Source: Octopus sinensis
Taxonomy: Eukaryota
Direction: 5' to 3'
Assembly (NCBI RefSeq): GCF_006345805.1
Contig: NC_043002.1
Location: 83,824,001-83,888,000 of the forward strand
Length of the DNA stretch: 64,000 bases
The notes under the pieces were generated by a model. The model made no database searches and was not told where the DNA came from. It saw only the letters and a list, made by a program, of their open reading frames with translations. The position numbers and the translations under genes are program-made. This document shows positions 2,779-62,484 of the stretch, in pieces (within the stretch, counting starts at the first letter, position 1; each line of letters begins with the position of its first letter).

Positions 2779-2979
2779 ATCGCTATTGCTGCAACGAATA
2801 GAGTCCTGGCGAAAGCTAGACAAGATAACAGAAACCAAACTATGACATTCGATGATTATATTTACCTTATGAAGCAAAATGTACTCTTGAAATCAGATGA
2901 TGGTGATGATATTATCAGAAGTAGATTTAAAAGTTACAGCCAGACTCGTTTCGCTCAAAATTCTGTTGATGAAGAAATT
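2779..2979 (+). CDS. Gene family copy A, exon 3 (IAIAATNRVL...SVDEEI, 67 aa, phase 0-0)
   Basis: ttccag| acceptor and |gtacgt donor, 201 nt open frame. Same length as and about 39% identical to copy B exon 3 (37659-37859). Confidence 0.92.
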
Positions 2980-3028
2980 GTACGTAATTGAAATTTTTCC
3001 GGTTTTATAAATTATATAACAAATATAT

Positions 3029-3460
3029 CGGATCTTTTCGGTTTGGCCGGCAGTTTTTTAAAATAATTTCCACGTAACTAAACACTTTTAAACTTCGTAT
3101 ACTGGTAAAATGTGCTTATAAAACATCGTTTTCTCTTGGCTTTATTGAAAAAATTCTATAGTTTGTAAGATATTAGTTGTTGTTTTTCTTCAATTTCTGC
3201 AATTTCAACAATCAATGACGTCTATTGAGGTGAAAACATTCTGTACCGTATGAATATGTTCCTCGTTTAAGAAACAGATTGGGTTTATTTACATTTGTGA
3301 AGAAAAAAGATAACACCCCTAACCCTAACTAACCCAAACTCTAAAACCCTAACCCTAAAACAGATTGAAATGCAATAGATCGATACTAGGGTCATAATTA
3401 TGGGTGACAATTTCATATGACACCGCTAGAAAAAACTGCCGTTCAAACCGAAAAGATCCA
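3029..3460 (+). mobile_element. Non-autonomous DNA transposon (MITE) with ~29-bp TIRs, 6-bp TSD (ATATAT) and internal telomere-like CCCTAA repeats
   Basis: Termini cggatcttttcggtttggccggcagtttt ... aaaactgccgttcaaaccgaaaagatcca. ATATAT at 3023-3028 and 3461-3466. A second, inverted copy lies at 6448-6880. Confidence 0.9.
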
Positions 3461-4583
3461 ATATATCATAATACTCAAACCAATAATGACCGAGTTTTTA
3501 TGTATATATTCATCTGTTGAATGTCTCCAAATACCAAGAAGTAGTAATAACTGAACACTGTAAGCAGTTACAGCGCTGTGAAGTTGTGAGGTTATTGTGA
3601 TTAGTTCAACATCTCTTGTGAGATTAGCTTCAACAAAGTTGATAGATTAGATATATTTTTAGAAGGTAAAGTCTTCAGCAACGTACTTACATCAAAGTAC
3701 ATTTGAGACAGCATAAAATTTCTGTTTCTAGTATAACTGTGATTTTGGGGAAAACGTATTTCTAAAAACGATTAAACTTATCGTCTTAGTTCTTCTGTAT
3801 ATTTCAGTACACCAGTAATTAGGTCGACTAGAGATTCCCAAAGGACAGTTGCTTAAATAACTTAACATCTGGTCAAGACTCTTACCTACAGGTTTCCGGG
3901 TAGCAGACAAGAAAACGTCCTCAATACATAGGTATTGATGGCAATTATGAAAATGTATCGTTCTGGACAAAACACCAGTTGCTCTTATCAAGGCATAACA
4001 CACGTCAGTCACCCAACTTAGGGTTACAGTGAAGCCACGAGAAGCAGAACAGAGGATGTACAATCTCGGCGAAAGAGTAGCTCACAGACAAGTATCGGCA
4101 TTTTCACGATGCTGGGGTCAACGGCCAGTACTTGAAGTATATTACTGCTAACGCCCGCATCTTGGCAACCATAAACGTTATTAAGCAAACAAAAGAAAAT
4201 ATTTTAAATAACAGAACCTATTTGTCCACTGAAAGCTTAGGTAACGGTGTTCAAATTTGGTCTGATTTCTTCTGAGTAGCTAAGTACTATCAAAATTATG
4301 TAGATGCTCGACGTCTCTTCGATACATTTCAGCCAATTAATAAGTGAAAATTAGTTCCGTTGTCAGATCTCCTAAGTTACTAATCTCTTAAAAGTCTTGG
4401 ATCAAACTGGTCCAGTGTCAAATTGGTGTACACTGAAGTGTCGCATGTGAAACTCATTGATTTGCGTAACTATTTGTTATTCTTATTTTATATAATTTTA
4501 CCATTGCTCCCGTAATTCAAAAAAATCAAAATGGCAATTATTTTTCTTCTTTTTTATCATTTTCATACTTTTATATTTTTCAG

Positions 4584-4805
4584 GTTAATGAGGTTATTGA
4601 CTGGTTTAAAAATGAAGTTGTTGTTGATCCGGACGTTTTGGCAGCCACTAAAATTGATATCGTTGACTTTGCAAATTTCGTTGCTGCAACTGGTGCCGCT
4701 CTCGATAGTTTGGCAGCACTCTTCGTGAAACGAGACTACGCAGAACGTAGCGTCGTTGATCTTGGAATTATTCGTTACCCCGATCTTGATCATCCTTTCT
4801 TCAAG
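4584..4805 (+). CDS. Gene family copy A, exon 4 (VNEVIDWFKN...RYPDLDHPFFK, 74 aa, phase 0-0)
   Basis: tttcag| acceptor and |gtaaag donor, 222 nt. 44/74 aa identical to copy B exon 4 by hand count. Confidence 0.95.
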
Positions 4806-5491
4806 GTAAAGACACTCAACATCTTGTTTTTATAAATAAATATCGAACCTGTTTTGAATTGAAAATCAGCTGCTTTATTTCCGACTAAAACATCTTGATT
4901 AACTAGGCACATACCTTAGGCTACATTAATCCCAATATTAATATTCGTAGAGAAATTTAAGTGAAGCATTGTGTAATATTAAATTACACAATAACTTGTC
5001 AAGGCCGAAAGAATGCGAAATGAATTACAAAAGTAAACTACAAAAGGGAAGACAGAACAACAGTTGAAGCTTAAGCCTTGTATTTCTTCGATATTTAGGG
5101 GGTTAGAAACCCTTCATCAAGACAAGTGGAGAAATGGAAGATGGGTTAAAGCTACTATCATTGCTCGGATATGTTGGAGAGGGTAGTGACATGTGCAGAT
5201 TGATGTTGTTAAAATAGCCATTCTGTTGTTAATGCTGATTTCAGCTTATTAATTTGGTTAGCCTCTTTGATTCTAAGGTTGCCTGGGTGAGTGTCACTGA
5301 GAGGTGTTGTTCACGGTGAACGAGTGACAAGTGTTGTTCATGGTGAGAGAGAGAGTGACAGTGTGGTTCATAAAATTTATAAGTTTTGTTGTTTAGAGAT
5401 ACTTGGCTATGTTTGATGCCTAATAAACATATTACCTCGACGAAATAATTTTTTAATTGAGATCTCAATTTTCCGTTTTGTTACATTTTAG

Positions 5492-5680
5492 CTGTTCCGT
5501 ATCCAGTTGTTCGCATACAGGAAGAACACAAGAATAGCATTCGTGCAAAATGACAAGAGCGGAATTAAAGGACAATTTGAATCAAAGATTTTCAGACCCC
5601 AAACGACCGTTTTGAAGCACATGGCTGAATCAGTGAGAAGAAAGGCTATGCAAGAGGCCCAAGAAACGTTTGAGTCTTAA
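5492..5680 (+). CDS. Gene family copy A, terminal exon 5 (LFRIQLFAYR...QETFES*)
   Basis: ttttag| acceptor, 189 nt ending TAA at 5678-5680, AATAAA at 5762-5767. Same length as copy B exon 5. Confidence 0.94.
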   Translation: MFRIQLFAYRKNTRIAFVQNDKSGIKGQFESKIFRPQTTVLKHMAESVRRKAMQEAQETFES

Positions 5681-5864
5681 GCCCTGAAAGCCTCATTGTA
5701 TTTTTTCATTGTATAATTTTGTATTGTGGCGAGGATTAAGGATATATGAATGTATATACAGAATAAAACGTAAAAAGAAGTAAATATCGAATCCTTCCTT
5801 TTACCGAAATTAAAAGTAATTGTTAATTGTTATTTTTAGCTTTTCTTCTTTACATCATCAGCAG

Positions 5865-5948
5865 CACCACTTCCACCACCACCACCACCACTATCACCAC
5901 TATCACCACCACTACCGTTACCACTACTATCGTCATCGTCATCATCAT
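5865..5948. repeat. Imperfect (CAC/CAT)n trinucleotide repeat
   Basis: Direct reading. It explains the His-rich and Thr-rich ORFs in the track. Confidence 0.85.
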
Positions 5949-6369
5949 CAGAAAAAAAGGAAAGCACGTTCGGTTACTAAGTTGCTTGAAGATCCAGCAA
6001 ATGCTGCTAGATTTACAGCCAAATTTCTTTTAAATTTATACAGTACCGATTAAGAATTGTTGAAACCCTAAGAAGACATCAGATAATACAACATTAAATA
6101 ACCATATGATAACTACAAAAAAAAATCAAGAAATCAATACTAGGTGCATATACAAGATTGCCATTTGCAAGTCTATTCAGTTTCAATCAGGGTTGCGGTA
6201 GGGTTAAACAACAACAACAACAACAATATAATGCTGAAATAGATTTACTTTGAAACGTAGAAGGTACTTTATTTCTCTACTTCGTTGTCATTAAAAAAAA
6301 ACTATTTTTCATACAAGAGGATATGGTAGACACTTTGCACAATCCCAGATCTCCAATCAAAACAGATAC

Positions 6370-6439
<70 letters not shown>

Positions 6440-6447
6440 GTAACGGT

Positions 6448-6880
6448 TGGATCTTTTCGGTTTGAACGGCAGTTTTTCTAGCGGTGTCATATGAAATTGT
6501 CACCCATAATTATGACCCTAGTATCGATCTATTGCATTTCCATCTGTTTTAGGGTTAGGGTTAGTTAGGGTTAGGGTTAGGGGTGGGGGAAGGGTATCTT
6601 TTTTTCTTCAGAAATGTAAATAAACCCAATCTGTTTCTTAAACGAGGGACATATTCATACGGCACAGAATGCTTTCACCTTAATAGACGTCATTGATTGG
6701 TTGAAATTGCAGAAATTGAAGAAAAAAACAACAAATATCTTACAAACTATGGAATTTTCTCAATAAAGCCAAGAGAAAAAGATGTTTTATAAACACATTC
6801 TACCAGTATACGAAGTTTAAAAGTGTTTAGTTACGTGGAAATTATTTTTAAAAACTGCCGGTCAAACCAAAATAGAACCG
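6448..6880 (-). mobile_element. Second copy of the 6-bp-TSD MITE, inverted, carrying (TTAGGG)n
   Basis: Reverse complement of 3029-3460 along its length. TSD AACGGT at 6442-6447 and 6881-6886. ttagggttagggttagttagggttagggttaggg near 6549-6582. Confidence 0.9.
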
Positions 6881-7624
6881 AACGGTTTTTAAATTGATTA
6901 GTTGAAGTGAGAAAGCAGTTGTGACGATAATTATTTGCTGTTATAATTGCATACTGTAGGATGTGAAAGATGAACAATGCATGAAGTTTTAAGGAAATAT
7001 TTATTTACCGCTACGTTACAATTACCTTGCCTCGACGGGCAGGTTATGATAAATCCAAAAGCATGCGAAAAAAGGTTAAATGCAGTAGAATGTTTCATTA
7101 CATAGTTTGGCGTATACGAAAAGTTAGTAGTAATCCACAGATAGCGATAGAATGATGTTGTAAGAGAACAGAATTGGAGCTAGTGAGAGTGAGTGGGTGT
7201 AGGACGTTGTCTTTCTTTTACCTTCTGGCCGTTTTGTCTGCCTGCCTCCATGATTCTAGTGATCGGTTCATTAACTGATGTTAGCTCTCTTTCAACTCAC
7301 GAGTTTGTCACCAAGGTGACTAACTGATTTTTGCTTGCGGTATGCTTGCTTGTATAAAGATCCAGAAGGATAGATATATCATTGAAAACAATAGATTTAG
7401 TTGGTGGTCTTGTTATCTCTATTCTAGCTTTTGGTGAAGTAGAAGAGGTTAGAAAGGGTCAAGTGGTGAAGACATTATTTCGGCCTAGCTAAAGGCATCT
7501 GGAAAATGTAAAACTGCTGTCAGAGAAAAATCATTGTTCCATCGTGGGAAAAGTTCTATTGCAGTGTTAATTTAAATTTGGCTCTGGTGGATCGAATCCA
7601 CTTCATGCATGCAAGATCCACTAC

Positions 7625-7657
<33 letters not shown>

Positions 7658-7683
7658 ATATATATATAATATATATATATATA

Positions 7684-8690: not shown

Positions 8691-8729
8691 AAGAAAATAC
8701 TGGCAGTGTGCTTTATAACATTTCTAATA

Positions 8730-9092: not shown

Positions 9093-9183
9093 TATTACAA
9101 TATAATATTATACATACCGTAAGTAAATCGGTAAATCTATTTCGAGTAAATGGTGTTATGGTATACCTGACATCATATTAGAG

Positions 9184-11802: not shown

Positions 11803-11804
<2 letters not shown>

Positions 11805-13198: not shown

Positions 13199-13438
13199 TG
13201 AATTAATGGTGACTTACCCTGCATTCAGTATTTCATGGTTATGACCTCCTTCTTCAGAAATTAGCGAATTTTGCAAATGTAAACCTCCTCAGGAATTAAC
13301 GAAAATTAGAGATGTACATGTGTATGAGTATGTGAGCCCATAACCTCACACGCATGTACATCTGCAACATTCGCTAATTTATGAAGAAGGGGTCATAAAC
13401 CTGAATTATTGAATGCAGGCTAAGTCACCATTAATTCA
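13199..13438. repeat. Fold-back inverted repeat (~85-bp imperfect arms) with an inner hairpin
   Basis: tgaattaatggtgacttaccctgcattca... pairs with ...tgaatgcaggctaagtcaccattaattca. Confidence 0.85.
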
Positions 13439-13510
13439 TATAGCTGTTTTTATATAATATATTCCACACAATGCTTTATGCTAACTATTCCATATATATA
13501 TATATGTGTG

Positions 13511-14876: not shown

Positions 14877-17800
14877 CTATCTGACGTTCCCGGTAATTCC
14901 CGGAAAAGCGGGGCTTATCCCTTGGTTCTGTTCTCATAATTGTTTCGCTAATCCAATAACAAGAATACAAGATATGTAGCCCTTAAAATGGTTTTTGTGC
15001 ATTTACAGAGAATACCGAACTGTCTTACACAGAATCTTGTTTTAAGGAATTCCCAATAAGTTATGAATACCCAAATTGTGAAGTCAGTTATGTAGTAACA
15101 TGAAATTAGTTACCCGATAGTAAGAATTCGAATAAAGCGTTCCCAGAGTATATAGAACTCAAGAGTAAATAGCAATAAGGTACGTATACTAAAATCGTGA
15201 AGTATGTTACGTAATAATAGGCTAATCAGATATAAGATAATAACAATTCAAAGTAAATAACCCTGAAAAGGGCTTTTGTGCGTTCCCAGAGAATATTACC
15301 CCCAGGGGCACTAATGTTGAAATAGATTTACAATGAATGTAGTAACAGACTGACATTAGTTTTACAGTAGGCATACAAATAAATTTGTATATAGATTTAA
15401 AAATAAAATAACATGTAGATTATCAATACACTTACAATACTTACAAATATTACAGTTAAATAATAAATACCTGATGGTTTGGTGAATCTTATTAAAGTTT
15501 GCAGAGCTTCTTGATAAACATCATCTTTGGTTTTCCCTTGAGGGGCATAAATAAACAAATGATTAGGATTGCCGACTCTTGAGCATCCCACATAAAGTTG
15601 GCCATGGCAGAAAACTGGTTCCGCAAGGTTCAGACCTACCACATTCAAGGACTGTTCCTGAACCTTGTTAATGCTCATTGCAAAGCTCAATTTCAACGGG
15701 AATTGCAGGCGCTTGTACTGGAAAGGCATATCCAAGGGAATAAGTGAAATTCTTGGAAGGAATACAGGCTCACCGCTTGCTTTACCAGTAAAAAATTGTT
15801 ATCTCCAGAATTGTTGGAATCATCTTTATTATAAGTCGTGTATCATTGCAACATTTTGGTGGATCGAGGTTTCGAAGCAGCATAGCTGGTGCCCCAATCT
15901 TGAGGTGCAAGTTGTGAGGTGGGATGCTAGGTGGTGTTAGACTATTCAAGAATTCAACTGGATAATTCATAGCTTCATCGATGTTCAGTATAGTGTCAAT
16001 GGAATTGTTGATGTGACGCTCGCCTGGCAAATTTTCTAGAAGTTTAAAGTTCAAATCATCAACTCCCACATTCTTTAGCACTAAAATGGCACGGATTTTC
16101 AGCTAGTTGTGGTATATAAACTGGTTCCTCTGGTTAGGAAACACCTTGTTCATTAGTTCCTTTAAATCAGATACCATATGTCCAAAAGGCAAGTTTACCC
16201 ATCCATCAGTATCTCGTCAACCGAAGTGCCATCACCAACGTCCAACAGTTGCTTTGAAAAGGTTTTGTCTGCATCATCACCACTGAGTTGCACTTTCATG
16301 TTGGTTGTGAGTCTTAGATTTTGCACACTGCTCCATAGGTAGAATGACTTTATGCTGGCATTTACTTATCAGTTCTTGTCCCCTTTGAAACCACCGGAAG
16401 AATTTGTATAAAGTCTCATGCAAGCAAGACTGTGGCACTTCCCATGAGCCTGGTGTTGTATCTCAGATCCTGTAGGGACATGTCAAGAGCTTCAAAGGAA
16501 ACCTTATGGTACATTGTCGCTTCATCCCAGATGACCAACCTGCATTCACCCAGAAGTTTGCCTTTTATAGAACCCCGACTGATGTTGCAGTTTGCGTTCT
16601 TTTTCTTGGAAAGGTCTAAAAGGAGTTTGAAATAGGAATGAGCTGTGGTGCCACCACTTAGCAGAGTTGCAGCCATGCCACTTGACGCCACTGCTATGGT
16701 AATGTGTTTCATTTAGCGCAGTTTAGCCAGAAGGTTGATGACTAATGTTTTGCCAGTTTCACATGGAGCATCAAGAAAGAAAAGACCTCTTTCATTTTCA
16801 ATGCTCGAAATAATGGTGTTATAAACACCCAGTTGTGTTCTTTGTCAGCGATATACGCCGTCATTTCCTCGATGTCATAGCTGATTTCTCGCAGTTACTC
16901 AATTGCGAGATTGTTTGCTGTCTGCTCCGATTAAGGCATACCAAATGTGGCAATGCCTTGACCTCCCATAGCTTGCACTCGGGCGTCCAGGTCAAGTAAT
17001 GCTTCATTGTAAATGGCGTTACTGAACGTGCAATTTCCGCTGAGGCTTGCCTTTGAATCCTTTCTAGATGTCCTCTGCCATGCTGGTCTTGTGGATCAGC
17101 CAAAGCTTGTGAAGTTCACGCAAGCCACATGTCATCAACATGATAGAAAATAGCGGGTGCAGTTGACTTAGTGCTGTGCTGACTACTGACTGCTGCCTCT
17201 TCCAGTGTCTGGTCATAGTGAACATCGTCCTCCAGTAGTCCATGTTTGGCGCAGGCTTCTCTATAGGTTGTGCACACTTTCCATTGTGTCTTCGAAAGTC
17301 TGTGAATGATGTAGGACCTCTGACAGTGTGTAGGTAGTAGTAGATGCAGAAAGAAACACTCCTGCTGATTAGGGTGCCCAGTGTGCACCCCCTCACGATG
17401 GCCTCACTTCTGAAGACAGCATCTTCTTCCCAGCCCTCAATGCATGTTCCTTGCTTGCGCCTGTTCCATCCATTGTGTGCCCAGGTATAGTACACGGGGA
17501 CCTCTACATACAACAGTGTTCGGGAAAACAGATCACATTGGCATAATTTGAAGAAAGATGTTAAAATGGTTTCTGGTGGATTCAGAAATACGTTTCGAAC
17601 ATTGTCTTCTATGAAATATATATGGTGGCATTTTCAAGATGTACAGATAGATTTTAAGGTGTTCCTACATGTAAACAGAGTGTGACCTTTGTATTGACAG
17701 TGCATTTGTCTAAAAGCAGAACAGTTCTTCATGCAGTGCTTGTCAATTGGCTGAAGTGACATCAAAGGCATCGTCATCCATGGTATATACGTGAATAAGT

Positions 17801-18150
17801 CAGCAACCTAAATAAGTGGATCAATTGTTTAGGAAAATACTATTTATTTGTTTAATGGTTGTACTGGATAAATTGTGAAATAACTCTAACAGTTCAAATG
17901 CTAAAAAATAAGCATACTCAATTTAATTTGTACCAAATAATATAGGAAAACGATTTGGTTATTTCCCTTGGCTGTTAAAATAAAATATATTAGTTATAGA
18001 AAAGGATCCCTTCCAGGGGCCCTGTTATCGATTTTTTTCAACAATCTGAATATGCCATCAGGTTTCCAAATATGATAAAACGATGTAGGAGGAGTTAGCT
18101 AACAAACACACTCATAGACAGAATTTCCCACATATGTAGTTGATGTGTGG
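14877..18150 (-). mobile_element. Decayed autonomous-type Helitron with Pif1-family helicase fragments
   Basis: ORFs 15397-15735 (FQYKRLQFPLKLSFAMSINKVQEQSL...HGQLYVGCSRV), 15782-16081 (PPHNLHLKIGAPAMLLRNL), 16416-16712 (VASSGMAATLLSGGTTAHS...IWDEATM) and 16861-17513. Hairpin-like 3' end near 14877-14907. 5' boundary approximate. Confidence 0.92.
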
Positions 18151-18191
18151 TATGTTTATTTATTTATATATATATATATATTTGTTTATAT

Positions 18192-18252
<61 letters not shown>

Positions 18253-18278
18253 AATACATATATATATGTATATGTGTA

Positions 18279-18316
<38 letters not shown>

Positions 18317-18669
18317 ATATATATTAATAAATAAAACTATCATATATATAAACATATATGTACTACCTACCTCTACATACATATACACGCATATAGAGTA
18401 CAGGACACCAAAAAGACGTCGAACACAATGAGAAACGAAAACATAGACACAAACCCAAGGAACTGGACATTTTTTTAAACAACAAAAATAGAGTACAGGA
18501 CAATTAACACAAAGAAAAAAACCCTTCTTCAGTCGCTATGGTTTCATCTACTCTACGTTTCGAAGGTGAAAGCGAGACGTATCTTCGACAAGAAACTTTC
18601 CTTCCTGCGAAAAGCAAATCAATTAAAATTCTGAGATCTTTTCGCAGAGGGGTAAAAAATGGTAATGTT

Positions 18670-18720
<51 letters not shown>

Positions 18721-18810
18721 TTGTGTGTGTGTTGTGTGTGTGTGTATGTATGTTATGTATTATATATATGTATGTATGTATATATGTATGTATATATATG
18801 TATATATATG

Positions 18811-18865
<55 letters not shown>

Positions 18866-18878
18866 TATATATATATTT

Positions 18879-18995
18879 ATTTATTTTATAGAAGGAGCTT
18901 CTACAGGACTAGAACTGTTTCATTCAAAAGAAATCGATGATTTCTTTTGAATGAAACAGTTCTAGTCCTGTAGAAGCTCCTTCTATAAAATAAAT
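18879..18995. repeat. Perfect palindrome, 57-bp arms, 3-nt loop
   Basis: 18879-18935 is the exact reverse complement of 18939-18995. Confidence 0.95.
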
Positions 18996-21810: not shown

Positions 21811-22705
<895 letters not shown>

Positions 22706-22713
22706 TTTTCATT

Positions 22714-23225
22714 ATGTATGTATGTATGTATGCATGCATGCATGTATGTATGTATGTATGTATGTATGTATGTATGTATGTATGCATGTATGTATGCATG
22801 TATATATGTATGTATGTATGCATGTATGTATGTATGTATGTATGTATGTATGTATGTATGCATGCATGCATGTATGTATATATGTATGTATGTATGTATG
22901 TATGTTGTATGTATGTATGCATGTATATATGTATGTATGTATGCATGTATGTATGTATGCATGTATGTATGTATGCATGCATGTATGTATGTATGTATGT
23001 ATGCATGTATGCATGTATGTATGTATGTATGTATGTATGTATGCATGTATGTATATATGCATGTATGCATGTATGCGTGTATGTATGTATATATGTATGT
23101 ATGCATGTATGCATGTATATATGTATGTATATATGTAAGTATGTATGTATGTATGCGTGTATGTATGTATGTATGTATGTATGTATGTATGTATGCATGT
23201 ATGCGTGTATGTATGTATAAGTATG
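22714..23225. repeat. ~510-bp compound (ATGT/ATGC)n microsatellite
   Basis: Direct reading. It is the source of the MYVC/HTYI ORFs. Confidence 0.97.
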
Positions 23226-24479
23226 CATGCGCGTGTGTGTGTATGTATGTGTGTGTGTGTGCGAGGGGGTGCTGAAAAGTTCCTGACTTTAAGGGGCGAA
23301 AGACCTGGTTATAGGCCTTAACCATCAGAGTTCTTTTACAGAGCATAGAGAAACTGAAGGACCACTGCAATAAGTGTGTGAATCTGAGAGGCGAATATGA
23401 AGAATAAAATTATAATTAATTGATCCTCCTGTATTTTTTTAACCCAAAGCTAGGAACGGTGTGTGCTCAACGGACTTGCACACGGTTTCCATCAACAAAA
23501 TTCTCTTTAAAAGCATTACTTGGCCAGAGGCTATAGTTGGAGACACTTGCCCAAGGTGCTGCGCAGTGGAACTGAATCCGAAACCACGTCGTTGGAAAGG
23601 GAGCTGCTTAACCACCCAACCATGGATTAAAGATATGTTGAATACAATGTGCTATTATTTCCCATTGCAGTGGGACAATTGAAGAGCAAATGATATCCAC
23701 ATCTACTACTACTTATTTATCCAAATTCACTATAGCGTAAATTTGAATAAAGAAGTTGAGGAAGGAGGTACCAAATACCATTTGCAAAATTTAAATTAAT
23801 AAATTAATTATAATGACTCTCTTTAGATGAGAAAGGAAATTTGAACCTTGTACAAGTTTCTGGCAACGCTCAGAGAAAAGGGGAGACAATTTCAAAGCGT
23901 CAAGAATTACTCTCACGAAATTTATTTACATGCTTAGAGGAAAGAAAGTATGATTTTAGCTTGCCCGTAAGGGATAAACATGAACATGTTTCAGTCTATT
24001 AGCTCTCATCAACATAATATAAGTTTAACTAAGTCGGCGTAATTAGATAGTGAAGATCTTTATACAGAAGGAGAGTTGCCCAAAGACCAGACAGATTAAT
24101 ACATCACCTGGTCTTTGTGTGCCTGCAGCATAAATTAAGCTGTTGCACGTATTGAAGCCAAGTTTTCTGTTTGGGGATAATTTATTCTCCTCTTCCTACT
24201 AGTCATAGACGTCCGGAAAAATATCATGGGCAGAGCCCTTCCTCATCTAACTAAGCCGTTACAAAATCTTCTCCATCACAGAAAAAGAATTTATTCCACT
24301 TTTAAACTGTTTGGCGTTTGCAGTCTTACAATATAGCTACAGATTTGTACCCAATTTGCACCACAATATACCCATAACATTATCACACAGAGCTGTTCTT
24401 GTGATTTCTACGGCTTTAATGCTCTTTGGAAATGCTTGATGAACAGTCGTGTCTTCATTTTCATAACCCACTATTTCCT

Positions 24480-26980: not shown

Positions 26981-27032
26981 ATGAAGCTCATAGTTGCTCT
27001 GTTACTGTTGTGGTCCTTTGCCTATTCAAATG
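26981..27032 (+). CDS. Gene family copy B, exon 1: signal peptide MKLIVALLLLWSFAYSN(A)
   Basis: ATG in caaacATG context, basic residue plus hydrophobic core plus small residues, strong donor G|gtaagt. Phase 1 matches exon 2. Confidence 0.85.
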
Positions 27033-30025: not shown

Positions 30026-30204
30026 CTTCGTCTGCAGGTCTCAGCACAACTGGTGCTGTGGTTGCCCTGGCTCGTAGAATGATACAATCGTCAAAAACAG
30101 AAGATGTAGAGGACATGGCCATACTTCCTTACCACTGTGACTTGGCAGCTAGTTATGGACAGCTTAATAATGAAACCATAAAAAATATGGACAGAAATTT
30201 ACTG
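30026..30204 (+). CDS. Gene family copy B, exon 2 (ASSAGLSTTG...LPYHCDL...KNMDRNLL)
   Basis: catacag| acceptor and CTG|gtaagc donor, 179 nt. Phase 1 in and phase 0 out join exons 1 and 3 in frame. Confidence 0.88.
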
Positions 30205-32060: not shown

Positions 32061-32179
32061 AGAAATGTTTCTTTATTGTGAGAAGCGAGATCCAAAATGG
32101 CGTTCCACTTTATGTATGGTGCCATCATCAATGGCGGAATGTGGCCGTCCAGGAATAGGAGTAGCTTCCACGGATGTCC

Positions 32180-32790
32180 GACCACATTTGAACTGGCGAT
32201 GCCTGAGCTTGACTACGTTGTATAACGGTGCATCGTCATCATAAACTTCTTTCACTTCGTCGATAGTCTCTTTTGGTGCACGACCTTTCAGGTATAAGAA
32301 CCTGATCACGGACTTGCATTCAACTGCCTCCATTATAACACCTTAGTCCATCTTAGCAGCAGCCGTAAAAGACATACGAATACTAGTGGAGAGCTGCGAT
32401 TTACAATGTGACATGTAGACATGTATGATTATAACTAAACATAGACACACGTAGAGGTATACGCATGCGCAAATGAAGACACATACAATAGGAATACAAA
32501 ATACAAAATGGCTGACCGTTAGTAAGGAGAGACACACAGATAAGAAAGAAGAAAGCAAAGGACCACTGATGCAGTCACAGGAGTGTGACGAAAGAACTCT
32601 GGCCGAAATAAAATTAAGATTAATGTAAAAAATTAATAATGCTGAAGCAAAGTAATACCAAATATATAGTGCGTGTGTTTTTATTGGCTAAACTGGTAAA
32701 ATGACCATTCCTAAACACAATAATATTCAAGTTCCGTTTCCTGCAATAATCGGAAGTGGGTCAGGGAAAATCTTTAATGAACACCCCTCG
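32180..32790 (-). mobile_element. mariner 5' fragment (TIR plus HTH), interrupted
   Basis: ORF 32073-32333 (SVIRFLYLKG...FKCGRTSVE...GRP). tacgaggggtgttc-type terminus near 32790 on the minus strand. Confidence 0.75.
32560..32604 (+). ncRNA. Slightly degenerate minimal hammerhead motif
   Basis: GG(A)CCA-CUGAUGCA-GUCAC-AGGAGU-GUGAC-GAAA-GAAC-UC-UGGCC: 5-bp helix II, but A9 is replaced and helix III is one base off a palindrome. Confidence 0.45.
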
Positions 32791-36872: not shown

Positions 36873-37011
36873 TAAATAGACAAGAACAAAGAACCAACTT
36901 TTATTGATTTAGCTCTACTGCGTGGCACCCTTGAGCAAGTGGCTTTTACGAATTAATTATAGTCTTGAGTCGACGGAAGCTTTGTGAGTGAATTTGGTTG
37001 ACGGAAACCAG

Positions 37012-37052
<41 letters not shown>

Positions 37053-37279
37053 CGCGTTGTGCGTGTGTGTGTGTGTGTGCATGTGTGTGCGCGTAGGTAT
37101 ATCTATGTATATACGTGTGTATCTGTGTGTATGTATACAGCTATATATATGTATATATATATGTATATATATATATATATGTATGAATATATATGTATAT
37201 ATATATATGTATATGCATATCTATGTATATACGTATGTATGTATATATATATCTATATATATATATGCATGTATACATG

Positions 37280-37352
<73 letters not shown>

Positions 37353-37658
37353 CCTGTTTGTATGTGTATGTCTATGTGTTTGTTCCCAACCACCGCTTGA
37401 CAACTGGTGTTGGTTTGTTTACGTACCTGTAACTTAGCGGTTCAGCAAAACAAACCAACAGATAAGAACAAAGCTTTAAAAAAAAAGTCCTGGAGTCGAT
37501 TTGACTAACCCTTCAAGGCGGTGCCCCGGGATAGTCGCAGTCTTAAAACTAGAACCAATAAATGATGAAAGATAAAACATAAAAAGATGATATTGAGATT
37601 TATTGATACATAACCATTGGTAACCTCTGTTTTTGTCTTAACTGTCTCTATTCTACAG

Positions 37659-37859
37659 ATCGCCATAGCTGGACTCAACAAACGCATAGTAGCTGTGAGA
37701 AGAAACTTGGGCAACACTATAATTACTTTCAGAGATTACGTCTCTCTCTTGAATCAAAATGTCCTTCTGGTTCCTGACAATTCCACTGAAATTTTCAGAG
37801 AGAAATTCTTAGGCTATGAAGACTACCGTCTAGCTACCACTGACAAGCAGGAAGAAGTT
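37659..37859 (+). CDS. Gene family copy B, exon 3 (IAIAGLNKRI...DKQEEV)
   Basis: ctacag| acceptor and |gtaagt donor, 201 nt. Homologous to 2779-2979. Confidence 0.94.
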
Positions 37860-43834: not shown

Positions 43835-44056
43835 GTAGAAGAAGTTACTAACTGGTTTACAAATGAACTTATTAATGACCCAGACGTATTAGCTGACACG
43901 AAGATCGAAATTGTTGACTATGCAAATATCGTAGCAGCTACTGGCGCAAAGATCAAAGGCTTTCGTACTCTTATTCTCCGAAATCATTACGTTGAACGCA
44001 GTGTCGTTGATATGGGTGTCCTTCGTTACCCTGATTTAAATAAGCCCTACTTCAAG
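43835..44056 (+). CDS. Gene family copy B, exon 4 (VEEVTNWFTN...RYPDLNKPYFK)
   Basis: ttacag| acceptor and AAG|gtaata donor, 222 nt. Homologous to 4584-4805. Confidence 0.95.
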
Positions 44057-47948: not shown

Positions 47949-48137
47949 TTATTCCGTATCCAGTTGTTTGCTTACAGACAATCTAAGGCAGTGTTATTTA
48001 TGCAAAAGGATACAAGCGGAATCAGAGGACAGTATCAATCAATGGTTTTCGTACCTAATGAAGCAGTTATTGCGAAATTAAAACAAGCAACCAAAATTAG
48101 AGCAGCAAACGAAGCTTTAGAAATGTTTAATGAATAA
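47949..48137 (+). CDS. Gene family copy B, terminal exon 5 (LFRIQLFAYR...LEMFNE*)
   Basis: ttgcag| acceptor, 189 nt, TAA at 48135-48137. The spliced CDS is 52+179+201+222+189 = 843 nt, or 280 aa. Confidence 0.95.
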   Translation, partial: LFRIQLFAYRQSKAVLFMQKDTSGIRGQYQSMVFVPNEAVIAKLKQATKIRAANEALEMFNE

Positions 48138-50965: not shown

Positions 50966-51898
50966 ACATGAACCGAATTCGTAGAAAAATGGCTGGGTGT
51001 TCACAGTTGGAACATTATCGACTTAAGGCTCCTACGATCGGTACTTACGGAAGATTAAACGAAGACGACATATAAATAGTAATATTTCTTAACTTTAATT
51101 TCTTACAGTCATTGGACTGCGGCTATGCTTGGACATCTCCTTGAAGGCTTTAATCTAAGAAATTGATCCAAACATATTCAAAAGCATTTGTATATCTTCG
51201 GTTTAAAAACTTCAGTATTTTGGATCAATATATTTGAATTTTTGAACAAATAATAGATCACAGAAAGAAGTGAAGATTAAAGAAACATTTTAAAGTCTGA
51301 AATACAAAAAAAAATATCTTAATTTGAATTAAATATAATTAACTTTTAGCTCAAAGAAGATGAAATAAAAAAGCATAATAATAAAAAAACACCAAAGAAT
51401 TAAGAATTATTGCTTATTTTGAAAAATACACTGAAGATAACTAAGACACTTTCACTGAATTTTTCAGCTGAAAAAAATGTTTGAAATTTTTTAAATATGA
51501 AAAATTTCTTACTCTAAAATTTCTGACTCTAAAATCAGTAGAAAGAAACAAAAGACTCTCGCGTCAAACTGAATAATGGATCTGGAGAATGCTTGCATGC
51601 ATGCATGTATGTATGTATGTATGTATGTATGTATGTATGTATGTATGTATGTATGTATGTATGTATGTATGTATGTATGTATGTATGTATGTATGTATGC
51701 GTGTGTGCATGTTTGTGAGTGTGTATATTTATGTATGTGTGCTTATATGTATGCGTGTGCGTGTATACGTATTTTCACCAAAAATTTTCACACGAAATCA
51801 GGAATAAAAACAAAAACAATCCAAATATGCGTATTTTTTTTTTGTCTTAAATTCTTAATGTGAACTCAAATACTTATGATAAAGTAATAATAATAATA

Positions 51899-51933: not shown

Positions 51934-52069
51934 TGGTGATAATTTTAGCATGCATAGCAAAACAAAAGTGCCCCTTGTTACTCTTGGCCCCCGGGGGATG
52001 CCCGGTACTAAGGCAGCTGAAATAAAGTTATACTGAAAAGAAACCATAAAGGATAATGATAATAATGGT

Positions 52070-52500
52070 TTCAAATGTTTAACACAAGGGCAGCTTGGGA
52101 GAGGGGATTAAGTCGATTATATCGACTCCAGTACGTAACTGATACTTATTTAATCGACCCCGAAAGGATAAAAGGCAAAGTCGACATCGGCGGAATTTGA
52201 ACTTAGAACGCAACGGCAGACGATATACCGCTAATCATTTCACTCGGCGTGCTAACTATTCTGCCAGCTCGTTGTCTTTGATAATATCAAAATAATATTA
52301 ATCCTTTCTACTAAAGTCACAAGGCCTGAACTTTTTAGGGGGGGGGGGGTATTAGTCGAACGTAATGCCGGACGAAATGCTGCTAAGCATTTCGTCCGGC
52401 GTGCTAACGATTCTGCCAGCTCGCCGCCTTTAATAAAACGTCCTACGATAAGCACAAGGCCTGAAATTTTGTAGCAGGGTGCTAGGCGATTACGTAAACC
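52070..52500 (-). mobile_element. Cluster of SINE-A copies
   Basis: Reverse-complement heads ctaacgattctgccagctcgccgcc and cggcggaatttgaac. Confidence 0.8.
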
Positions 52501-55480: not shown

Positions 55481-55511
<31 letters not shown>

Positions 55512-57499: not shown

Positions 57500-57554
<55 letters not shown>

Positions 57555-59364
57555 CATATATAAACTGTACACGAATACTAAAGGTAGAACAATACTTGTC
57601 TAAAGATTTCAAAGGCGTCAAGTATGAATTAGTTCTTACCTGATCCAAACGCTTTCTTAATGCCATTATACATCCCTCTGATGCTGTCAGATGTGGTAAA
57701 TTCAGAAAGCGTTGTGCGTCTACAAATACGACATGATAATTATTGCCATGTGGAGTAACTATAATTAGCTTGGTTCTAGTTTAGGTGGTGGATACCATCG
57801 AATGTAGCTACTGCAATATCTAGCCTTATTACGTTTTCCATTTCTCTTATACATGAATTTGTGATTGACGGACCTTCTAGAATCCCTGTCATGTTGGTTA
57901 GATGATGGTCAAATGTCTGCGTAAAATTGTTGTATACACCCGCCTATAGTTGATGGGGACGTCATGACAATAAATAGGGTCCTTAACATTTAAAAAAGAA
58001 GTCGAAAAAGAAGTAATGAAACTTGGATGAAGAAGTTGTTGAGAAACATACAGAATATGAGCTTTCAAACGTACAAAATCAACGAGATCTTGTATGGTTG
58101 GCTGCTGCCATATGAACTACGGAACTGTATCTGACTTAATTGCCTCCCAGTATTAGACTGGTATCCAGCTGATACTCTCCTTTCTGTTATTTTATTCTGC
58201 ACCAGCTTATATTAGTACTCACTTGGCTCAAAATACCGTTGATGACACTATTGTGAATTTTTATTGTGTTTTAGAAACGAACAAACGAATTGTCTTGTAA
58301 ATGTTAGCTTATACTATCAAAAATTTAAGAAACTACTTTGAAAATATTTCAGATTAATGCAAATTTTGGATGGTAGCGTCCAATTGACTTGAAAAGGAAG
58401 ATTTGACTGTGAATAAGTTCGTTGATAGTAGGTGTAGTATGGACGAATTATTAAGAACATTTGCTTGGCAAGTACGAAATCCCAGATTCGATCTTATTGC
58501 GAGGCATCTTGAGTAAATATTATTTTCAATAGTTTTGCGTTGATCTATCCCTTTTGAGAGACAGTGAACCGACGGAAACTATAGCTGTCCATCGAGTGGA
58601 TTGTAGCTGTAATTCTGCCCGAGAATTATGTAAAGGATACACGTATCCGTAGAATGCTCAGACTCTTTACACATTAATTCAAGAGTAGGTAACTCGGTTG
58701 AACGTATAACAGCTTCCTCAGTGTCGAAAGATGGAGATTCATTGACACCAATTCACTGAAAGTGTTTTGTGATCACGTATTGAAATAACATTACGATCAA
58801 CAGATGCTAGCATGAAACTGATTTCAAATATGAGCTTAAAAACATAGATGTCAACTGTACTGAATATTATTCGGCTGTAAGTTTATGTTCATCTTGATAA
58901 TCATAAATTCTTTATAGCAGAATTTTATATTAATATATACACTAACAAGTATATAAATTTAAAATATTATGTTCAATGATACCTTCCTTCTGGAACACGT
59001 TGTAATTCCCAACATTTTGTACTTCTTGTTTTGTTACACACACACACATAAACACACACACACACACACAAACACACGCACGCACACACATACATACACA
59101 CACACAGCTATGGATTTCTATAAGGAAACTTTATCGCTTGACTGGTGTTAGCACCGTGTCAGTCCTGTCTTCTCATCTAATATCATATTATATCCAAGCG
59201 TACATAATCCAGTATATTTAATTATTTCAAGACAGTACTTTGAGGAAGATATGGCTAATCTTTCTTGCATGTAAAATAAAGGCGTCCTAGTATTGCTAAA
59301 TAAGTAGCTGCCATTAGAAAAAAGCTATCTGTTTATACTTATTACTATAAATCAATTTATTAAT

Positions 59365-59500
59365 TCGTGACGTATATTTGCCATTTAAATATGGCTAACC
59401 CCTAAGGGTGGATGCTACTGTAATTTGTAGCCCCAGGAGGACTACAGTAGCATCCACCCTTAGGGGTTAGCCATATTTAAATGGCAAATATACGTCACGA
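59365..59500. repeat. Perfect 58-bp inverted repeat with 20-nt loop
   Basis: 59365-59422 is the exact reverse complement of 59443-59500. Confidence 0.95.
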
Positions 59501-59641
59501 TGTGTTGCAGCTACTGTTTATAACTCGCTCTAAGATTTATTATTAATTTATTAATTATATCATGTTAAATAATAAATTCAATTAAGCAATTATAATGCCA
59601 GAGACAAATTTTAACAAAATTTCTCTCGTTTATTCTCTTAG

Positions 59642-59863
59642 ATAAACAATGTAGTTGAATGGTTTACAAAAGAACTCGTCTAAAACCCAAACGTTTTAGC
59701 AACCACCAGAATCGACATAGTTGACTTTGGAAATAGCGTAGAGCTCACTGTTGCGACAGTTAACAGTTTGGAATCTCTACTCTTCAAAGAGGATTATGCT
59801 GAACGTAGTGTTGTTGATGTTGGTGTTCTTTGCTATCCTCATCTAGACCAACCTTTCTTCAAG
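59642..59863 (+). pseudogene. Gene family copy C, exon 4 homolog with in-frame TAA
   Basis: cttag| acceptor and AAG|gtgtat donor, 222 nt. INNVVEWFTKELV*NPNVLATTRIDIVDF...DYAERSVVDVGVLCYPHLDQPFFK, with TAA at 59681-59683. Confidence 0.92.
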
Positions 59864-60430
59864 GTGTATTTTTCACTGCTGGTAATATGGACGTAGTGCT
59901 GCATGCTTACCTTCTCATGCACGCCACCATCTCTGAACCAAAACAATGGAATTCTACACTTCATAGCCTGCTGCTATCTTAGCGCGCTCCTGGACAGTCA
60001 AATGACCGGCCATCTGGAAAATAAAAAATAAGAAATAAGATAATAAGAAAATAAGAATCCTCATTAATGTTGTCTGTTTAAAAAATATTTTCATCGTGAC
60101 TTCAGTGATACTAAAAGTTCTATAAACAATTTCTAATGCTTAGTTACTTTCCACCCACCCTGTATATAAATTCTTGTCTATATTCCCAGTGGATTTTTGT
60201 AAGCGAGATATGAAAAACAATATAAAAGCGTTAGTGCACGAATTAGAAAACTAGTATTCAACTCGAGATTCAGTAGAATTTAGCAGGTTAAAAATAAATC
60301 TATCCTTGGACAGAGTGTTAGTCAATCGCGTATGACAGTCCAGTATCCGTTTTATATTTTCTGTAACTCAGTAAACTGAGTTAAGCAATAATAAATCTCT
60401 GAACGAGGTATAGACAGTAACTGCACGACA

Positions 60431-60765
60431 ATGTGAAGTATATTTGCCATCTAAATATGGCTAACCACTAAGGGTGGATGTTACTGTGGCTTGTAGCCCC
60501 AGGAGAACATCTTCTCCAGCTGGCTATTGACACACTTTGTGCCCGGTGATTGTCGTGCACTGATGACGGGTCAATACCCAGAAACTGCAGTCCGTGCGTA
60601 TCACTTAGGTTGACGAGGGAAGGATAACCTCCCTTTGCAAATACCGATAGAGCACAGAAAGTGTGTCAATAGCCAGCTGGAGAAGATGTTCTCCTGGGGC
60701 TACAAGCTACATTAACATCCACCCTTAGTGGTTAGCCATATTTAGATGGCAAATATACTTCACAT
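60431..60765. repeat. 108-bp inverted repeat, same family as 59365-59500, with a degenerate hammerhead-like spacer
   Basis: Arms 60431-60538 and 60658-60765 differ at 2 positions. The spacer contains ctgatga...gggtcaataccc...gaaactgcagtc. Confidence 0.9.
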
Positions 60766-61109
60766 CAGTGAACTGAGTTAAGCAAAATTAAAAACACTTT
60801 CCTGAGATACGGGACAAAGTCTACCTTAAAATTAATATAACCAAATTTTATGCTCTCTGCAATTTGGCCTGTACATAACTATACGATAAAACTGTGTCAG
60901 GAAAACAAAATACGTTTCCTTGAGTGAGCAGAGTCAAAATATTTTCTGAACTTCAATTAGAACGATTCTGTTGTGATGTACTGCTATTCTTGAAATTAGT
61001 TTGACGGTCATTTTGAAACCTCCGAATCTTAGACGCAATATTTTTAAATGCTGAAAATGTACAATTCTAAGCGTTTACTTAATATTTACCAGAGTATTAT
61101 TTTGCTCAA

Positions 61110-61560
61110 AAGAAAGGCGGTCATTTAACAGAATCGTTAGCACGCTAGAAAAAGAGCTTAACGTCATTTTTTCCGACTTTGCGATCTTAGTTCAAGTTCC
61201 ACCGAGTCGAACTTTCCTTTTCTTTCCTCCCTTCAGGGTTAATATGATAAAAGTACCATGTGTGAACTATTGTAGATGTAATCGACTAGCCTTCTCCCTT
61301 GTGCCGTAAGTAGAAAGGATTATTTTTTCAAGTAAAAAGCAATGGATTGACAGAATCGTTAGAGCGTCGGTCAAAATGTCTTGCGGTATGTAATTACACT
61401 TCTTTACGATCTGAGTTCAAATCCGGCATGGATCAACTGTGCGTTCATCCCTCTGAGGTTGATAAAATAGAGTACCAGTCAAGTAGTGGAGTCGATTTAA
61501 TCGGAAAAATTCCTTCTACAAATTTCTCGCACAACCATTTATACAAGAGATATTTTACTA
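61110..61560 (+). mobile_element. Two degenerate SINE-A copies
   Basis: cagaatcgttag heads near 61129 and 61350, followed by gttcaa and gtacca motifs. Confidence 0.7.
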
Positions 61561-62109
61561 TGGCGAGCATTGTACTTGAAAATTCAGTGGATTAATCAGG
61601 CCGAATGATTTGTTTTTCTTTTGTAGTTCAAATTCTTGCAAAGAAACCAAACTCCTTGCTGGGACGAGAGTTAACCCGACGATAGAACTGACTCTTGTAC
61701 TCAAAGTCTCCGAGCAAAGACACCTAATTTTGTTTGACACTTTATAATATAATTAATGCTTCGTCAGATAACATTTCTGATTTTAAGTCTTCTAATGATC
61801 AACTGCAAGCGTAATGACAGTATTACGGCACTGACCCCAATCTAGGGGGACATTCAGATTGGACCGAAAAACACGAAAAACTCTCAAGTTAATGTCCTAG
61901 TGTATTTATCACTTATAAACTTATTAAGAACATGCAAAATTATTTTAGTGGTAAAAATGTAGCTCATAGGTTTTTTATTGAAAATTTTACCATGTTTGTC
62001 AAGGACTGACGGCAAACAAGCCTGCAATTCTTTACTGATGAGCTTCAAAGTAAAGAAAATAAGTCCTGTTTTTAAAATTTTCTGTTCTTTTTACTTTCTT
62101 CTGTTTTAG

Positions 62110-62484
62110 CTTTTCCGTATCCAGTTGTTTGCCTTCGGGAGAAGCAGCAGAGTGATTTTTGTGCAAAAAGACACCTGTAGAATCAAAGGACAGAACGAAG
62201 CAAAAATGTTCAAAGCCAGTAAAACGGTTTTGAGCAAACTGAGGGAAACTGTACGACAGAAGACTAGAAATGCAGCAGAGGGAACGTTCGAGACTGAACC
62301 TTGGAATTTGTGGCGGATTATATTTGTATGTTGCTTAAAGCCGAATACTGATAGAAATAAATTGACTAGAAACCACATTTTGAGTACCTATTATTATTTT
62401 ATTTTCCTGAATAAAGTCGAAACGATATACTTTCTAGTGGTGGGTAAGATTAGCTTTCTGAAAACGACCCCACCGAAAATATAA
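62110..62484 (+). pseudogene. Gene family copy C, exon 5 homolog with stop-loss
   Basis: ttttag| acceptor, LFRIQLFAFGR...GTFET. The codon at the paralogous stop position (62296-62298) is GAA instead of TAA, so the frame runs on to 62484. Confidence 0.9.

Follow-up and report, generated by a model that had tools for sequence, protein, structure and literature searches.

We analyzed a stretch of 64,000 nucleotides (nt) of the Octopus sinensis genome (hereafter the window; chromosome CM016864.1, approximately positions 83,824,001-83,888,000, + strand), which carries a tandem array of related genes coding for proteins that are predicted to be secreted. The array has four members, all on the + strand, in the order A, B, pseudogene C, and D. 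Two intact genes (A and B) and one dead copy (C) are located in the window, and D follows just past its 3' edge. That the array is real and that C is a pseudogene is close to certain, and as a genomic object the array is a textbook case of a birth-and-death tandem multigene family. The locus is already annotated and, as an array, ordinary. What is new is the identity of the protein family: it has no curated entry, occurs in scattered lineages, and is predicted to adopt a cytolysin fold. The best overall explanation, which we hold with moderate confidence and which depends on a structure model, is that a tandem birth-and-death array encodes secreted membrane effectors of this fold.

The gene array and the evolution of its members

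Gene B lies completely in the window, and its five exons (Table 1) translate exactly to O. sinensis LOC115213439 (280 amino acids, aa). An initial annotation, made from the sequence alone, had not listed exons 1 and 2 of this gene. Gene A reaches into the window with exons 3 to 5. The product of this part is identical in 202 of 203 aa to an O. vulgaris hypothetical protein (P0001), and the O. vulgaris exon map places exons 1 and 2 of A outside the window, ∼19.4 kb and ∼2.4 kb upstream of its start. Gene D (LOC115213384; 83,899,237-83,915,644) is located on the same strand and starts 11.2 kb past the 3' end of the window. The exon sizes are 52/188/201/222/189 nt for A (taken from the O. vulgaris exon map), 52/179/201/222/189 nt for B, and 52/191/195/231/195 nt for D (taken from the O. 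bimaculoides gene model), with both lengths and phases being conserved.

The initial annotation had described a tandem cluster of three paralogs with a shared exon architecture. As a same-strand array with conserved exon lengths and phases this description holds, but with D a fourth member has to be added. The sizes of exactly 201, 222, and 189 nt given for exons 3, 4, and 5 of A and B were reproduced by direct reading and by scripts, and the hand count of 97 identical aa out of 203 between A and B, without indels or stops, was exactly confirmed in an ungapped alignment. The similarity of the individual exons is far beyond chance (per-exon tblastn, E 1e-12 to 1e-29). As had also been claimed, the introns of A and B share nothing recognizable: no mutual similarity between the introns of A, B, and C was detected by blastn (word size 7, E≤1e-3). 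When all stop-to-stop pieces of the six frames were scanned with a hidden Markov model (HMM) of the family, no further family exons were found in the window beyond those of A, B, and C. The array had been suspected to extend past both window edges. This is true for the 3' edge only, since D is located downstream and the upstream side holds just exons 1 and 2 of A itself. No family exons were found within 10 kb upstream of A in either O. vulgaris or O. bimaculoides.

The O. bimaculoides orthologs carry the consecutive identifiers LOC106875294 (A), LOC106875293 (B), and LOC106875292 (D). The array there lies downstream of an OPA3-like gene and upstream of a sarcosine/dimethylglycine-dehydrogenase-like gene (DAO/FAO_M/GCV_T domains). 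Over 41,157 nt, the window matches the O. sinensis assembly GCA_006345805.1 with 100% identity, and O. vulgaris is 98.8% identical to the window over the stretch available for comparison. Contamination or misassembly was ruled out, since the genes contain spliceosomal introns, are located on chromosome-scale scaffolds, and are flanked by animal genes at syntenic positions in three Octopus genomes. For the 17.85 kb between B and D in O. bimaculoides the coverage is complete. This interval is syntenic with the window up to ∼55,260, and neither tblastn nor blastn found any trace of the C exons in it. In O. bimaculoides, C is deleted or otherwise missing.

In O. sinensis, everything 5' of a stub of exon 3 has been lost from C, and exons 1 and 2 are not detectable between B and C. 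The statistics for the stub itself are weak (tblastn E 0.14, HMM E 1.4), and its position, order, strand, and donor site all agree with the assignment: it ends with LAQNTVDDTI followed by gt, compared to FAQNSVDEEI followed by gt in A. Exon 4 contains an in-frame stop codon 13 codons into the exon. In exon 5, the codon aligned to the stop codon of A and B has been replaced by GAA (62296-62298), so that the reading frame continues for 61 more sense codons. Hence, of the reported match of C at exon 4 and at the stop position of exon 5, the former stands (222 nt, flanked by AG/GT), but the stop codon itself is gone. Of the 44 positions within exons 4 and 5 that do not vary among the intact A, B, group III (an off-locus paralog, see below), and cuttlefish proteins, 10 are altered in C, compared to 0-1 in each of the intact octopod members. 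The changes include R to C and D to H in the RYPD motif as well as S to C and G to R in the SGI motif, and they hit three of the six positions that are invariant across cephalopods, fungi, and a fern. The decay of C comprises the loss of its 5' exons, the gain of a stop, and the loss of its terminator and of conserved residues. The pseudogenization within the cluster that the initial annotation had proposed is borne out by this dead member.

Could C nevertheless be alive, with exons 4 and 5 serving as alternative 3' exons of B or forming a truncated stand-alone gene? Exon 4 has retained both of its splice sites and exon 5 its acceptor, the two exons are free of frameshifts across 408 nt, and the ratio of nonsynonymous to synonymous substitution rates (ω = dN/dS) between A and C is as low as 0.18. 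But the missing frameshifts and the low ω suggest that most of the divergence between A and C predates the inactivation of C, so that the low ω mostly reflects this earlier period. Moreover, no gene is called at this position in the O. sinensis record to the extent that it is covered (up to window position 58137), and no entry matched in the protein databases. Together with the early stop codon, the lost terminator, the altered invariant positions in both motifs, and the absence of exons 1 and 2 and most of exon 3, this makes a living C very improbable, and we treat it as a pseudogene.

The relationships of the paralogs were studied with a neighbor-joining tree based on the 136 columns covered by the C pieces, with 500 bootstraps scored as bipartitions. 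The exon pieces of C were kept as separate fragments with an X at the stop codon and all bases unaltered; in a first tree, only the translations of exons 4 and 5 had been placed side by side. The ortholog pairs of A, B, and D were each recovered with 99-100% bootstrap support. Orthologs therefore group by gene and not by species, so that concerted evolution is absent. A clade of A, B, C, D, and group III received 85% support, and a clade of A, group III, and C 70%; group III is the paralog LOC115232471, which is located alone on another chromosome (CM016860.1). C grouped with A in 46% of the bootstraps and with group III or subsets thereof in 27-37%, but never with B. Cephalopod and non-cephalopod sequences were separated with 90% support.

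Over exons 4 and 5, C shares 55% of its aa with A, 55-58% with group III, and 43-45% with B. In exon 4, the DNA of C is 73.6% identical to that of group III, compared to 69.7% for A. The initial annotation had placed C closer to A than to B, based on diagnostic residues shared by C and A. The relative closeness is supported by these identities and by the complete lack of a C + B grouping, but the residues themselves (such as IDIVDF and DYAERSVVD) are also present in LOC115232471 and hence represent retained ancestral states. Judged from these sequences, A and group III are not separated as the sister group of C, and B simply represents the lineage that has diverged further. The statement that gene order does not follow relatedness was correct, since the order A-B-C-D disagrees with the tree.

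The duplication that separated A and B is old, as had been concluded before. Over 203 codons, the comparison of A and B yielded a dN of 0.44, a dS of 1.72, and an ω of 0.26; over 280 codons, the values were 0.49, 1.92, and 0.25 (95% bootstrap interval 0.14-0.40). With dS (∼1.7-1.9) being saturated, the long-term ω is, if anything, below 0.25. The postulated purifying selection is thus evident between A and B, with an ω far from 1, but not to the same degree between orthologs. For A, comparing O. vulgaris with O. bimaculoides over 282 codons, dN is 0.097, dS 0.142, and ω 0.69 (95% interval 0.41-1.14). For B, comparing O. sinensis with O. bimaculoides over 280 codons, dN is 0.078, dS 0.088, and ω 0.89 (95% interval 0.51-1.86). 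These intervals are wide because they are based on only 15-23 synonymous differences. In the aligned introns of B, substitutions between the species amount to 8.2% and indel events to 0.92% per site. At these intron rates, a neutrally evolving coding sequence of ∼840 nt at this locus is expected to accumulate ∼3 stops and ∼8 indels, whereas none of either was observed in gene B (P ∼2e-5 under drift). Therefore, the genes have been kept functional while their proteins change at a near-neutral rate. This combination of near-neutral protein change and preserved reading frames is a pattern common in effector, immune, and venom genes. The array arose through old tandem duplications in octopods, followed by birth and death of its members.

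Predicted fold and candidate function

The cephalopod family members comprise 280-309 aa, and all of them possess an N-terminal hydrophobic leader, based on which they are predicted to be secreted. Their mature part has a mass of ∼30 kDa, a near-neutral isoelectric point, and a single cysteine in the four proteins checked for it. The gene models are already present in NCBI, and the database names of the members are only 'uncharacterized' or 'hypothetical'. Searches of Pfam, NCBIfam, and the PDB sequences with single proteins or with profiles of 8 or 89 members gave no relevant match, even at E≤10. One match (7rdr), a designed repeat protein aligned over 28 residues, was dismissed as compositional.

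The structure of the gene B protein was predicted with AlphaFold2 from 89 sequences (predicted local distance difference test, pLDDT, 87.1; predicted template modeling score, pTM, 0.85). An earlier model derived from 8 sequences had a pLDDT of 44 and was discarded as unreliable. A Foldseek comparison with the PDB returned as the 12 best matches exclusively structures of Cyt2Aa (1CBY), Cyt1Aa (6T14, 6T1A, 6T1C, 3RON), Cyt2Ba (2RCI), volvatoxin A2 (1VCY, 1PP0), or Evf (2W3Y). These matches have E values from 8.5e-5 to 1.3e-3 and probabilities of 0.87-1.00 over 177-256 alignment columns, and they are followed by a sharp drop (next E≥0.015, probability ≤0.35). Aerolysin/ETX-MTX2, MACPF, and actinoporin proteins were found neither as Pfam domains nor among the 50 PDB fold matches listed.

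The elements of the model follow each other in the order b1-a1-a2-b-a3-a4-a5-b5-b6-b7-a6 (strands, E: E53-60, E114-131, E194-208, E217-233, E236-254; helices, H: H74-94, H101-110, H138-157, H160-166, H170-183, H264-279). Hence, the three long C-terminal strands comprise 15, 17, and 19 residues. In terms of the gene structure, exon 4 of A is predicted to encode helices alpha3-alpha5 and the first of these long strands, including the RYPD motif, and exon 5 the other two long strands together with the helix at the C-terminus. The Cyt fold has been described as a single alpha/beta domain, in which an antiparallel sheet is located between the layers alpha1-alpha2 and alpha3-alpha5 (PMC4179158), and a membrane insertion of its three long strands has been proposed (PMC4179158; PMC5390079). 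The order of elements in our model is the same as in these descriptions, a comparison that extends to order only. Together with the Foldseek result, it indicates that the octopus proteins probably adopt the cytolysin fold of Cyt, volvatoxin A2, and Evf.

The Cyt toxins Cyt1Aa, Cyt2Aa, and Cyt2Ba of Bacillus thuringiensis (PF01338) resemble the octopus model in having a sheet between helical layers and three long C-terminal strands, as well as in their size of roughly 190-260 residues. Like the octopus array, cyt genes form small paralog clusters in some genomes, with four of them in Dickeya (PMC5390079). In contrast to the Cyt toxins, to which no sequence similarity is detectable and the template modeling score (TM) is 0.22-0.30, the octopus proteins carry a eukaryotic signal peptide and are encoded by five-exon genes, and their model has an extra N-terminal helix but lacks the final beta8 strand. 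The crystal and protoxin biology of the Cyt toxins does not apply to the octopus proteins.

Volvatoxin A2 of Volvariella volvacea is a eukaryotic protein predicted to share its fold with the octopus model, and it gave the best TM of all PDB matches (TMt 0.33-0.35, probability 0.99-1.00). Volvatoxin presumably falls under PF01338, a model that the fungal members of the octopus family do not match, and there is no sequence similarity between volvatoxin A2 and this family. Yet the family itself is abundant in Agaricomycetes, the home group of volvatoxin A2. A beta2-beta3 hairpin that volvatoxin A2 possesses between alpha1 and alpha2 (PMC4179158) is absent from the octopus model. Evf of Erwinia carotovora was matched over ∼250 of 267 residues (E 1.8e-4) and is similar in length to the mature octopus proteins, and interaction with lipids is a theme common to Evf and the putative role of these proteins. 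It likewise shows no sequence similarity to the family and differs in being a bacterial virulence factor with a palmitate covalently bound in a lipid-binding pocket (PMC5390079). Judged by sequence, the octopus proteins do not belong to the Cyt family, but at most represent a separate sequence family sharing the Cyt fold.

Based on the analogy to these proteins, a cytolytic function of the A, B, and D proteins is conceivable, although we rate its chances slightly below even. The protein would be secreted as a soluble monomer that binds directly to lipid membranes. The helical layers would then swing away from the sheet, and the long C-terminal strands would insert or oligomerize, thereby permeabilizing or disrupting the target membrane. 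By analogy with Cyt and volvatoxin A2, the resulting assemblies might be pores or detergent-like or filamentous forms; for the Cyt fold, both models are debated (PMC13211469). The biological role would be that of a defense or predation effector, which fits the near-neutral evolution of the proteins with strictly preserved reading frames. The initial annotation had drawn attention to toxin and immune-effector loci as places where tandem expansion and pseudogenization are typical, an idea that receives indirect support from the predicted fold.

A number of observations weigh against secreted cytolysin-fold effectors. The global superposition is poor, with a TM of only 0.22-0.35 and a root-mean-square deviation (rmsd) of 7.5-14 Å to the Cyt, volvatoxin, and Evf structures. 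Thus, the fold assignment rests on the local-structure alphabet of Foldseek and the order of elements. None of the 89 family members hit the Pfam model PF01338 (Bac_thur_toxin) even at E≤10, and the family profiles find no Cyt, volvatoxin A2, or Evf chain among the PDB sequences. The long C-terminal strands show no marked amphipathicity, and their hydrophobic alternation is unremarkable. The fold also does not dictate lysis: to Evf, which binds palmitate, no cytolytic activity is attributed in the text of PMC5390079 that we read. An ω near 1 between orthologs may also reflect weak constraint instead of diversifying selection. Finally, our literature search yielded neither expression data nor proteomic or activity data on the family members, and it returned no paper on these genes or on any animal Cyt-like protein.

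The poor superposition, with TM below 0.5 for every PDB match, and the missing sequence signal would also agree with a false Cyt-like match and with proteins that have an alpha/beta fold of their own with an unrelated extracellular role, for example in the matrix, the egg coat, or the sucker, in an ordinary lineage-specific expansion. In addition, alpha/beta/alpha sandwiches are common and also resemble pilins and killer toxins (PMC13211469). But the 12 best matches all belong to one fold, come from three independent clades, and cover most of the target chain before the sharp drop, and in their order the elements of the model agree one by one with the published Cyt topology. A spread over fungi, giant viruses, a cyanobacterium, and a single animal class would also be unusual for a structural animal protein. 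We therefore regard a false match as rather improbable.

The main rival to lysis is non-lytic lipid binding as in Evf. According to this explanation, the proteins have the same fold but are secreted lipid binders or carriers (Evf- or START/Bet v 1-like) acting in transport, signaling, or surface coating. Evf is indeed among the top structural matches, and it has been proposed that all proteins of the Cyt/Evf fold share a conserved cavity that binds lipids (PMC5390079). The weak amphipathicity of the long strands would fit, as would the location of a cyanobacterial family member between genes for an alpha/beta-hydrolase and a class-3 lipase (see below). Matches to START/Bet v 1 proteins follow in the fold search, but these are weak and non-significant (E≥0.024, probability ≤0.15, TM≤0.18), and most of the top matches are lytic proteins.

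The single cysteine of the mature proteins is reminiscent of the acylated cysteine of Evf, a likeness that lies in the presence of a cysteine. Each of the four mature proteins checked (A, B, D, and group III) contains just one cysteine. It is located in a PYHC motif and corresponds to residue 55 of the gene B protein (window ∼30138-30149), in strand b1 of the gene B model. A cysteine at this position is conserved in six of seven aligned full-length cephalopod sequences, but it is not invariant outside the cephalopods. Moreover, rapid evolution, tandem expansion, and pseudogenization fit genes involved in conflict better than housekeeping carriers. Overall, lipid carriers seem unlikely to us, though less so than a false fold match, and secreted membrane effectors with a cytolysin fold are still favored.

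Distribution of the family and possible origin

When 1.84 billion representative proteins were searched with the profile, 389 clusters were identified at E≤1e-3, 245 of which were found at E≤1e-10. The taxonomy was read for 30 looked-up clusters out of the 389. Fungi account for 13 of them, mostly Agaricomycetes plus Orbilia, and eight are Octopus paralogs, which are distributed over four or more chromosomes. Single clusters stem from the fern Ceratopteris, a transcriptome of the alga Acetabularia, the amoebozoan Mastigamoeba, and an oak record, and the remaining five are metagenome or read-archive assemblies. No animals other than cephalopods are represented among these 30 clusters. Some members differ in their domain composition. 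One distant member in the family alignment A2 contains an LDL-receptor class A domain (E 8e-15), another one gives a weak SUEL-lectin match, and the Acetabularia member is extended at its N-terminus by a long stretch. These features suggest that binding modules have been fused to the protein in some lineages.

Among 185,579 prokaryotic genomes a single match was found, in the metagenome-assembled genome of the marine cyanobacterium Okeania sp. SIO2F4 (contig NZ_JAAHGT010000108.1). This member is an intronless gene on a gene-dense contig (locus L007, 1785-2639) and encodes 284 aa without an obvious signal peptide. It is flanked by genes for an alpha/beta-hydrolase (Abhydrolase_1) and a class-3 lipase, with a TPR gene beyond, a neighborhood that hints at a lipid-related function.

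Two lines of evidence point to giant viruses. When the gene B model was compared with BFVD, it matched the predicted structure of the viral protein M1I283 with a TM of 0.80, an rmsd of 2.6 Å, and 29% identity (E 2e-22), and a second viral predicted structure, M1HBT0, with a TM of 0.59. Both accessions belong to a series that we take to be from chloroviruses. In addition, a read-archive contig with a GC content of 34% and genes spaced by 20-90 nt (L008) contains two tandem family members at 946-2632, located next to a DUF1390 gene. DUF1390 corresponds to the giant-virus orthologous group GVOGm0199, which is characteristic of viruses of Trebouxiophyceae (PMC13501317). Scans of IMG/VR gave no confirmed relative, so that the link to giant viruses rests on the structural match in BFVD and the DUF1390 neighbor. 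We conclude that family members are probably encoded by chlorovirus-type giant viruses.

Such a patchy distribution across kingdoms is typical of transferable toxins. Combined with the 90% bootstrap support for the split between cephalopod and non-cephalopod sequences, which fits a single origin, the scattered occurrence of these sequences would agree with one ancient acquisition by coleoids. Comparable cases are the biomphalysins and other aerolysin-like snail proteins and the venom families of centipedes, in which a microbial-type toxin fold with a patchy distribution has likewise been tandemly expanded and diversified in one animal lineage (PMC8047071, PMC3424411, PMC7864903). The beta pore-forming fold of the animal aerolysins differs from the cytolysin fold predicted for the octopus proteins.

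The most far-reaching scenario, which we consider possible but doubtful as a whole, is that coleoids carry an undescribed multi-locus cytolysin-fold family that was acquired once by horizontal transfer, possibly via giant viruses, gained introns, and was tandemly expanded into rapidly evolving, membrane-attacking effectors of immunity or venom. All known proteins with the predicted fold are microbial virulence proteins that damage membranes or bind lipids, and the published phylogeny describes the Cyt-fold family as restricted to diverse microbial taxa (PMC5390079). If the scenario were true, cephalopods, the sole animals among the clusters with a readable source, would become the first known animal lineage with a Cyt/volvatoxin-like fold. 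The family would then provide a new candidate class of effectors for cephalopod immunity or venom, a new case of gene sharing across kingdoms (including fungi, algae, a fern, a cyanobacterium, and chlorovirus-type giant viruses), and a non-bacterial model for the pore-versus-detergent question of the Cyt fold. With 389 representative clusters, the family has hundreds of members, and no record of it was found in Pfam, NCBIfam, or the literature. Even if the fold call were wrong, it would still be an unannotated, widely scattered protein family that deserves a Pfam entry.

Positions in the window and surrounding repeats

The positions of the exons and of the repeats are summarized in Table 1. 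The window has a GC content of ∼37% and contains dense microsatellites and decayed transposons, as in a eukaryotic-type genome.

Table 1. Exons of the array and other features in the window (window coordinates)
Feature	Position	Strand	Length (nt)	Evidence and remarks
Gene A exon 3	2779-2979	+	201	AG acceptor, GT donor, translation
Gene A exon 4	4584-4805	+	222	AG/GT; HMM E 2e-42
Gene A exon 5	5492-5680	+	189 including TAA	AG acceptor; reading and HMM
AATAAA/ATTAAA-type motif	5762			after gene A exon 5; pattern scan
Gene B exon 1, coding part	26981-27032	+	52	ATG and predicted signal peptide MKLIVALLLLWSFAYSN; ends in phase 1
Gene B exon 2	30026-30204	+	179	spliced reconstruction
Gene B exon 3	37659-37859	+	201	AG/GT; spliced reconstruction
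Gene B exon 4	43835-44056	+	222	AG/GT; spliced reconstruction
Gene B exon 5	47949-48137	+	189 including TAA	AG acceptor; spliced reconstruction
C exon 3 stub	58202-58252	+		PAYISTHLAQNTVDDTI; last ∼17 codons, then GT donor at the homologous codon boundary
C exon 4	59642-59863	+	222	AG/GT intact; in-frame TAA at 59681-59683; RYPD degraded to CYPH
C exon 5	62110-62484	+		homologous part 62110-62298; acceptor homologous; TAA at 62482-62484
Transposon remnant	206-1208	-		stop-broken, intergenic
Transposon remnant	15397-17513	-		stop-broken, intergenic
Transposon remnant	32073-32333	-		stop-broken, intergenic
Dispersed repeat	52061-52301			B-C intergenic
Dispersed repeat	60383-60764			C intron 4
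Dispersed repeat	61129-61503			C intron 4
(CATA/TGTA)-type tandem repeat	22644-23370		∼700	imperfect
Similar tandem array	18140-18950
Similar tandem array	36988-37437
Similar tandem array	51576-51863

In O. sinensis, gene B extends over 21.2 kb, compared to 10.8 kb in O. bimaculoides. Its exon sizes are identical in both species, and its introns are roughly twice as long in O. sinensis. The O. bimaculoides model of A contains a first exon of 49 nt and a micro-exon of 15 nt (13428-13442 of its locus), compared to a single first exon of 52 nt in O. vulgaris, which explains the lengths of 287 versus 283 aa. The micro-exon may be an annotation artifact or a real splice difference.

The stop-broken transposon remnants comprise a fragment of a mariner/Tc1-type DDE transposase, pieces of a PIF1-like helicase (Helitron-type) that match PF05970 (E 8e-24) and PF21530 (E 1e-14), and a Mos1-type HTH_48 fragment. 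The short dispersed repeats have a length of ∼150-220 nt and are mostly 70-90% identical, with many copies in the loci of A, D, and group III as well as in O. bimaculoides. They are probably elements resembling short interspersed nuclear elements (SINE-like). They account for the sole non-coding similarity among the paralog loci: when the source of C was sought by non-coding similarity to the loci of A, D, and group III, only dispersed repeats matched. The imperfect (CATA/TGTA)-type repeat gives rise to spurious long open reading frames on both strands (HTYIHTY..., CMYVCMY...), and three similar arrays are found elsewhere in the window.

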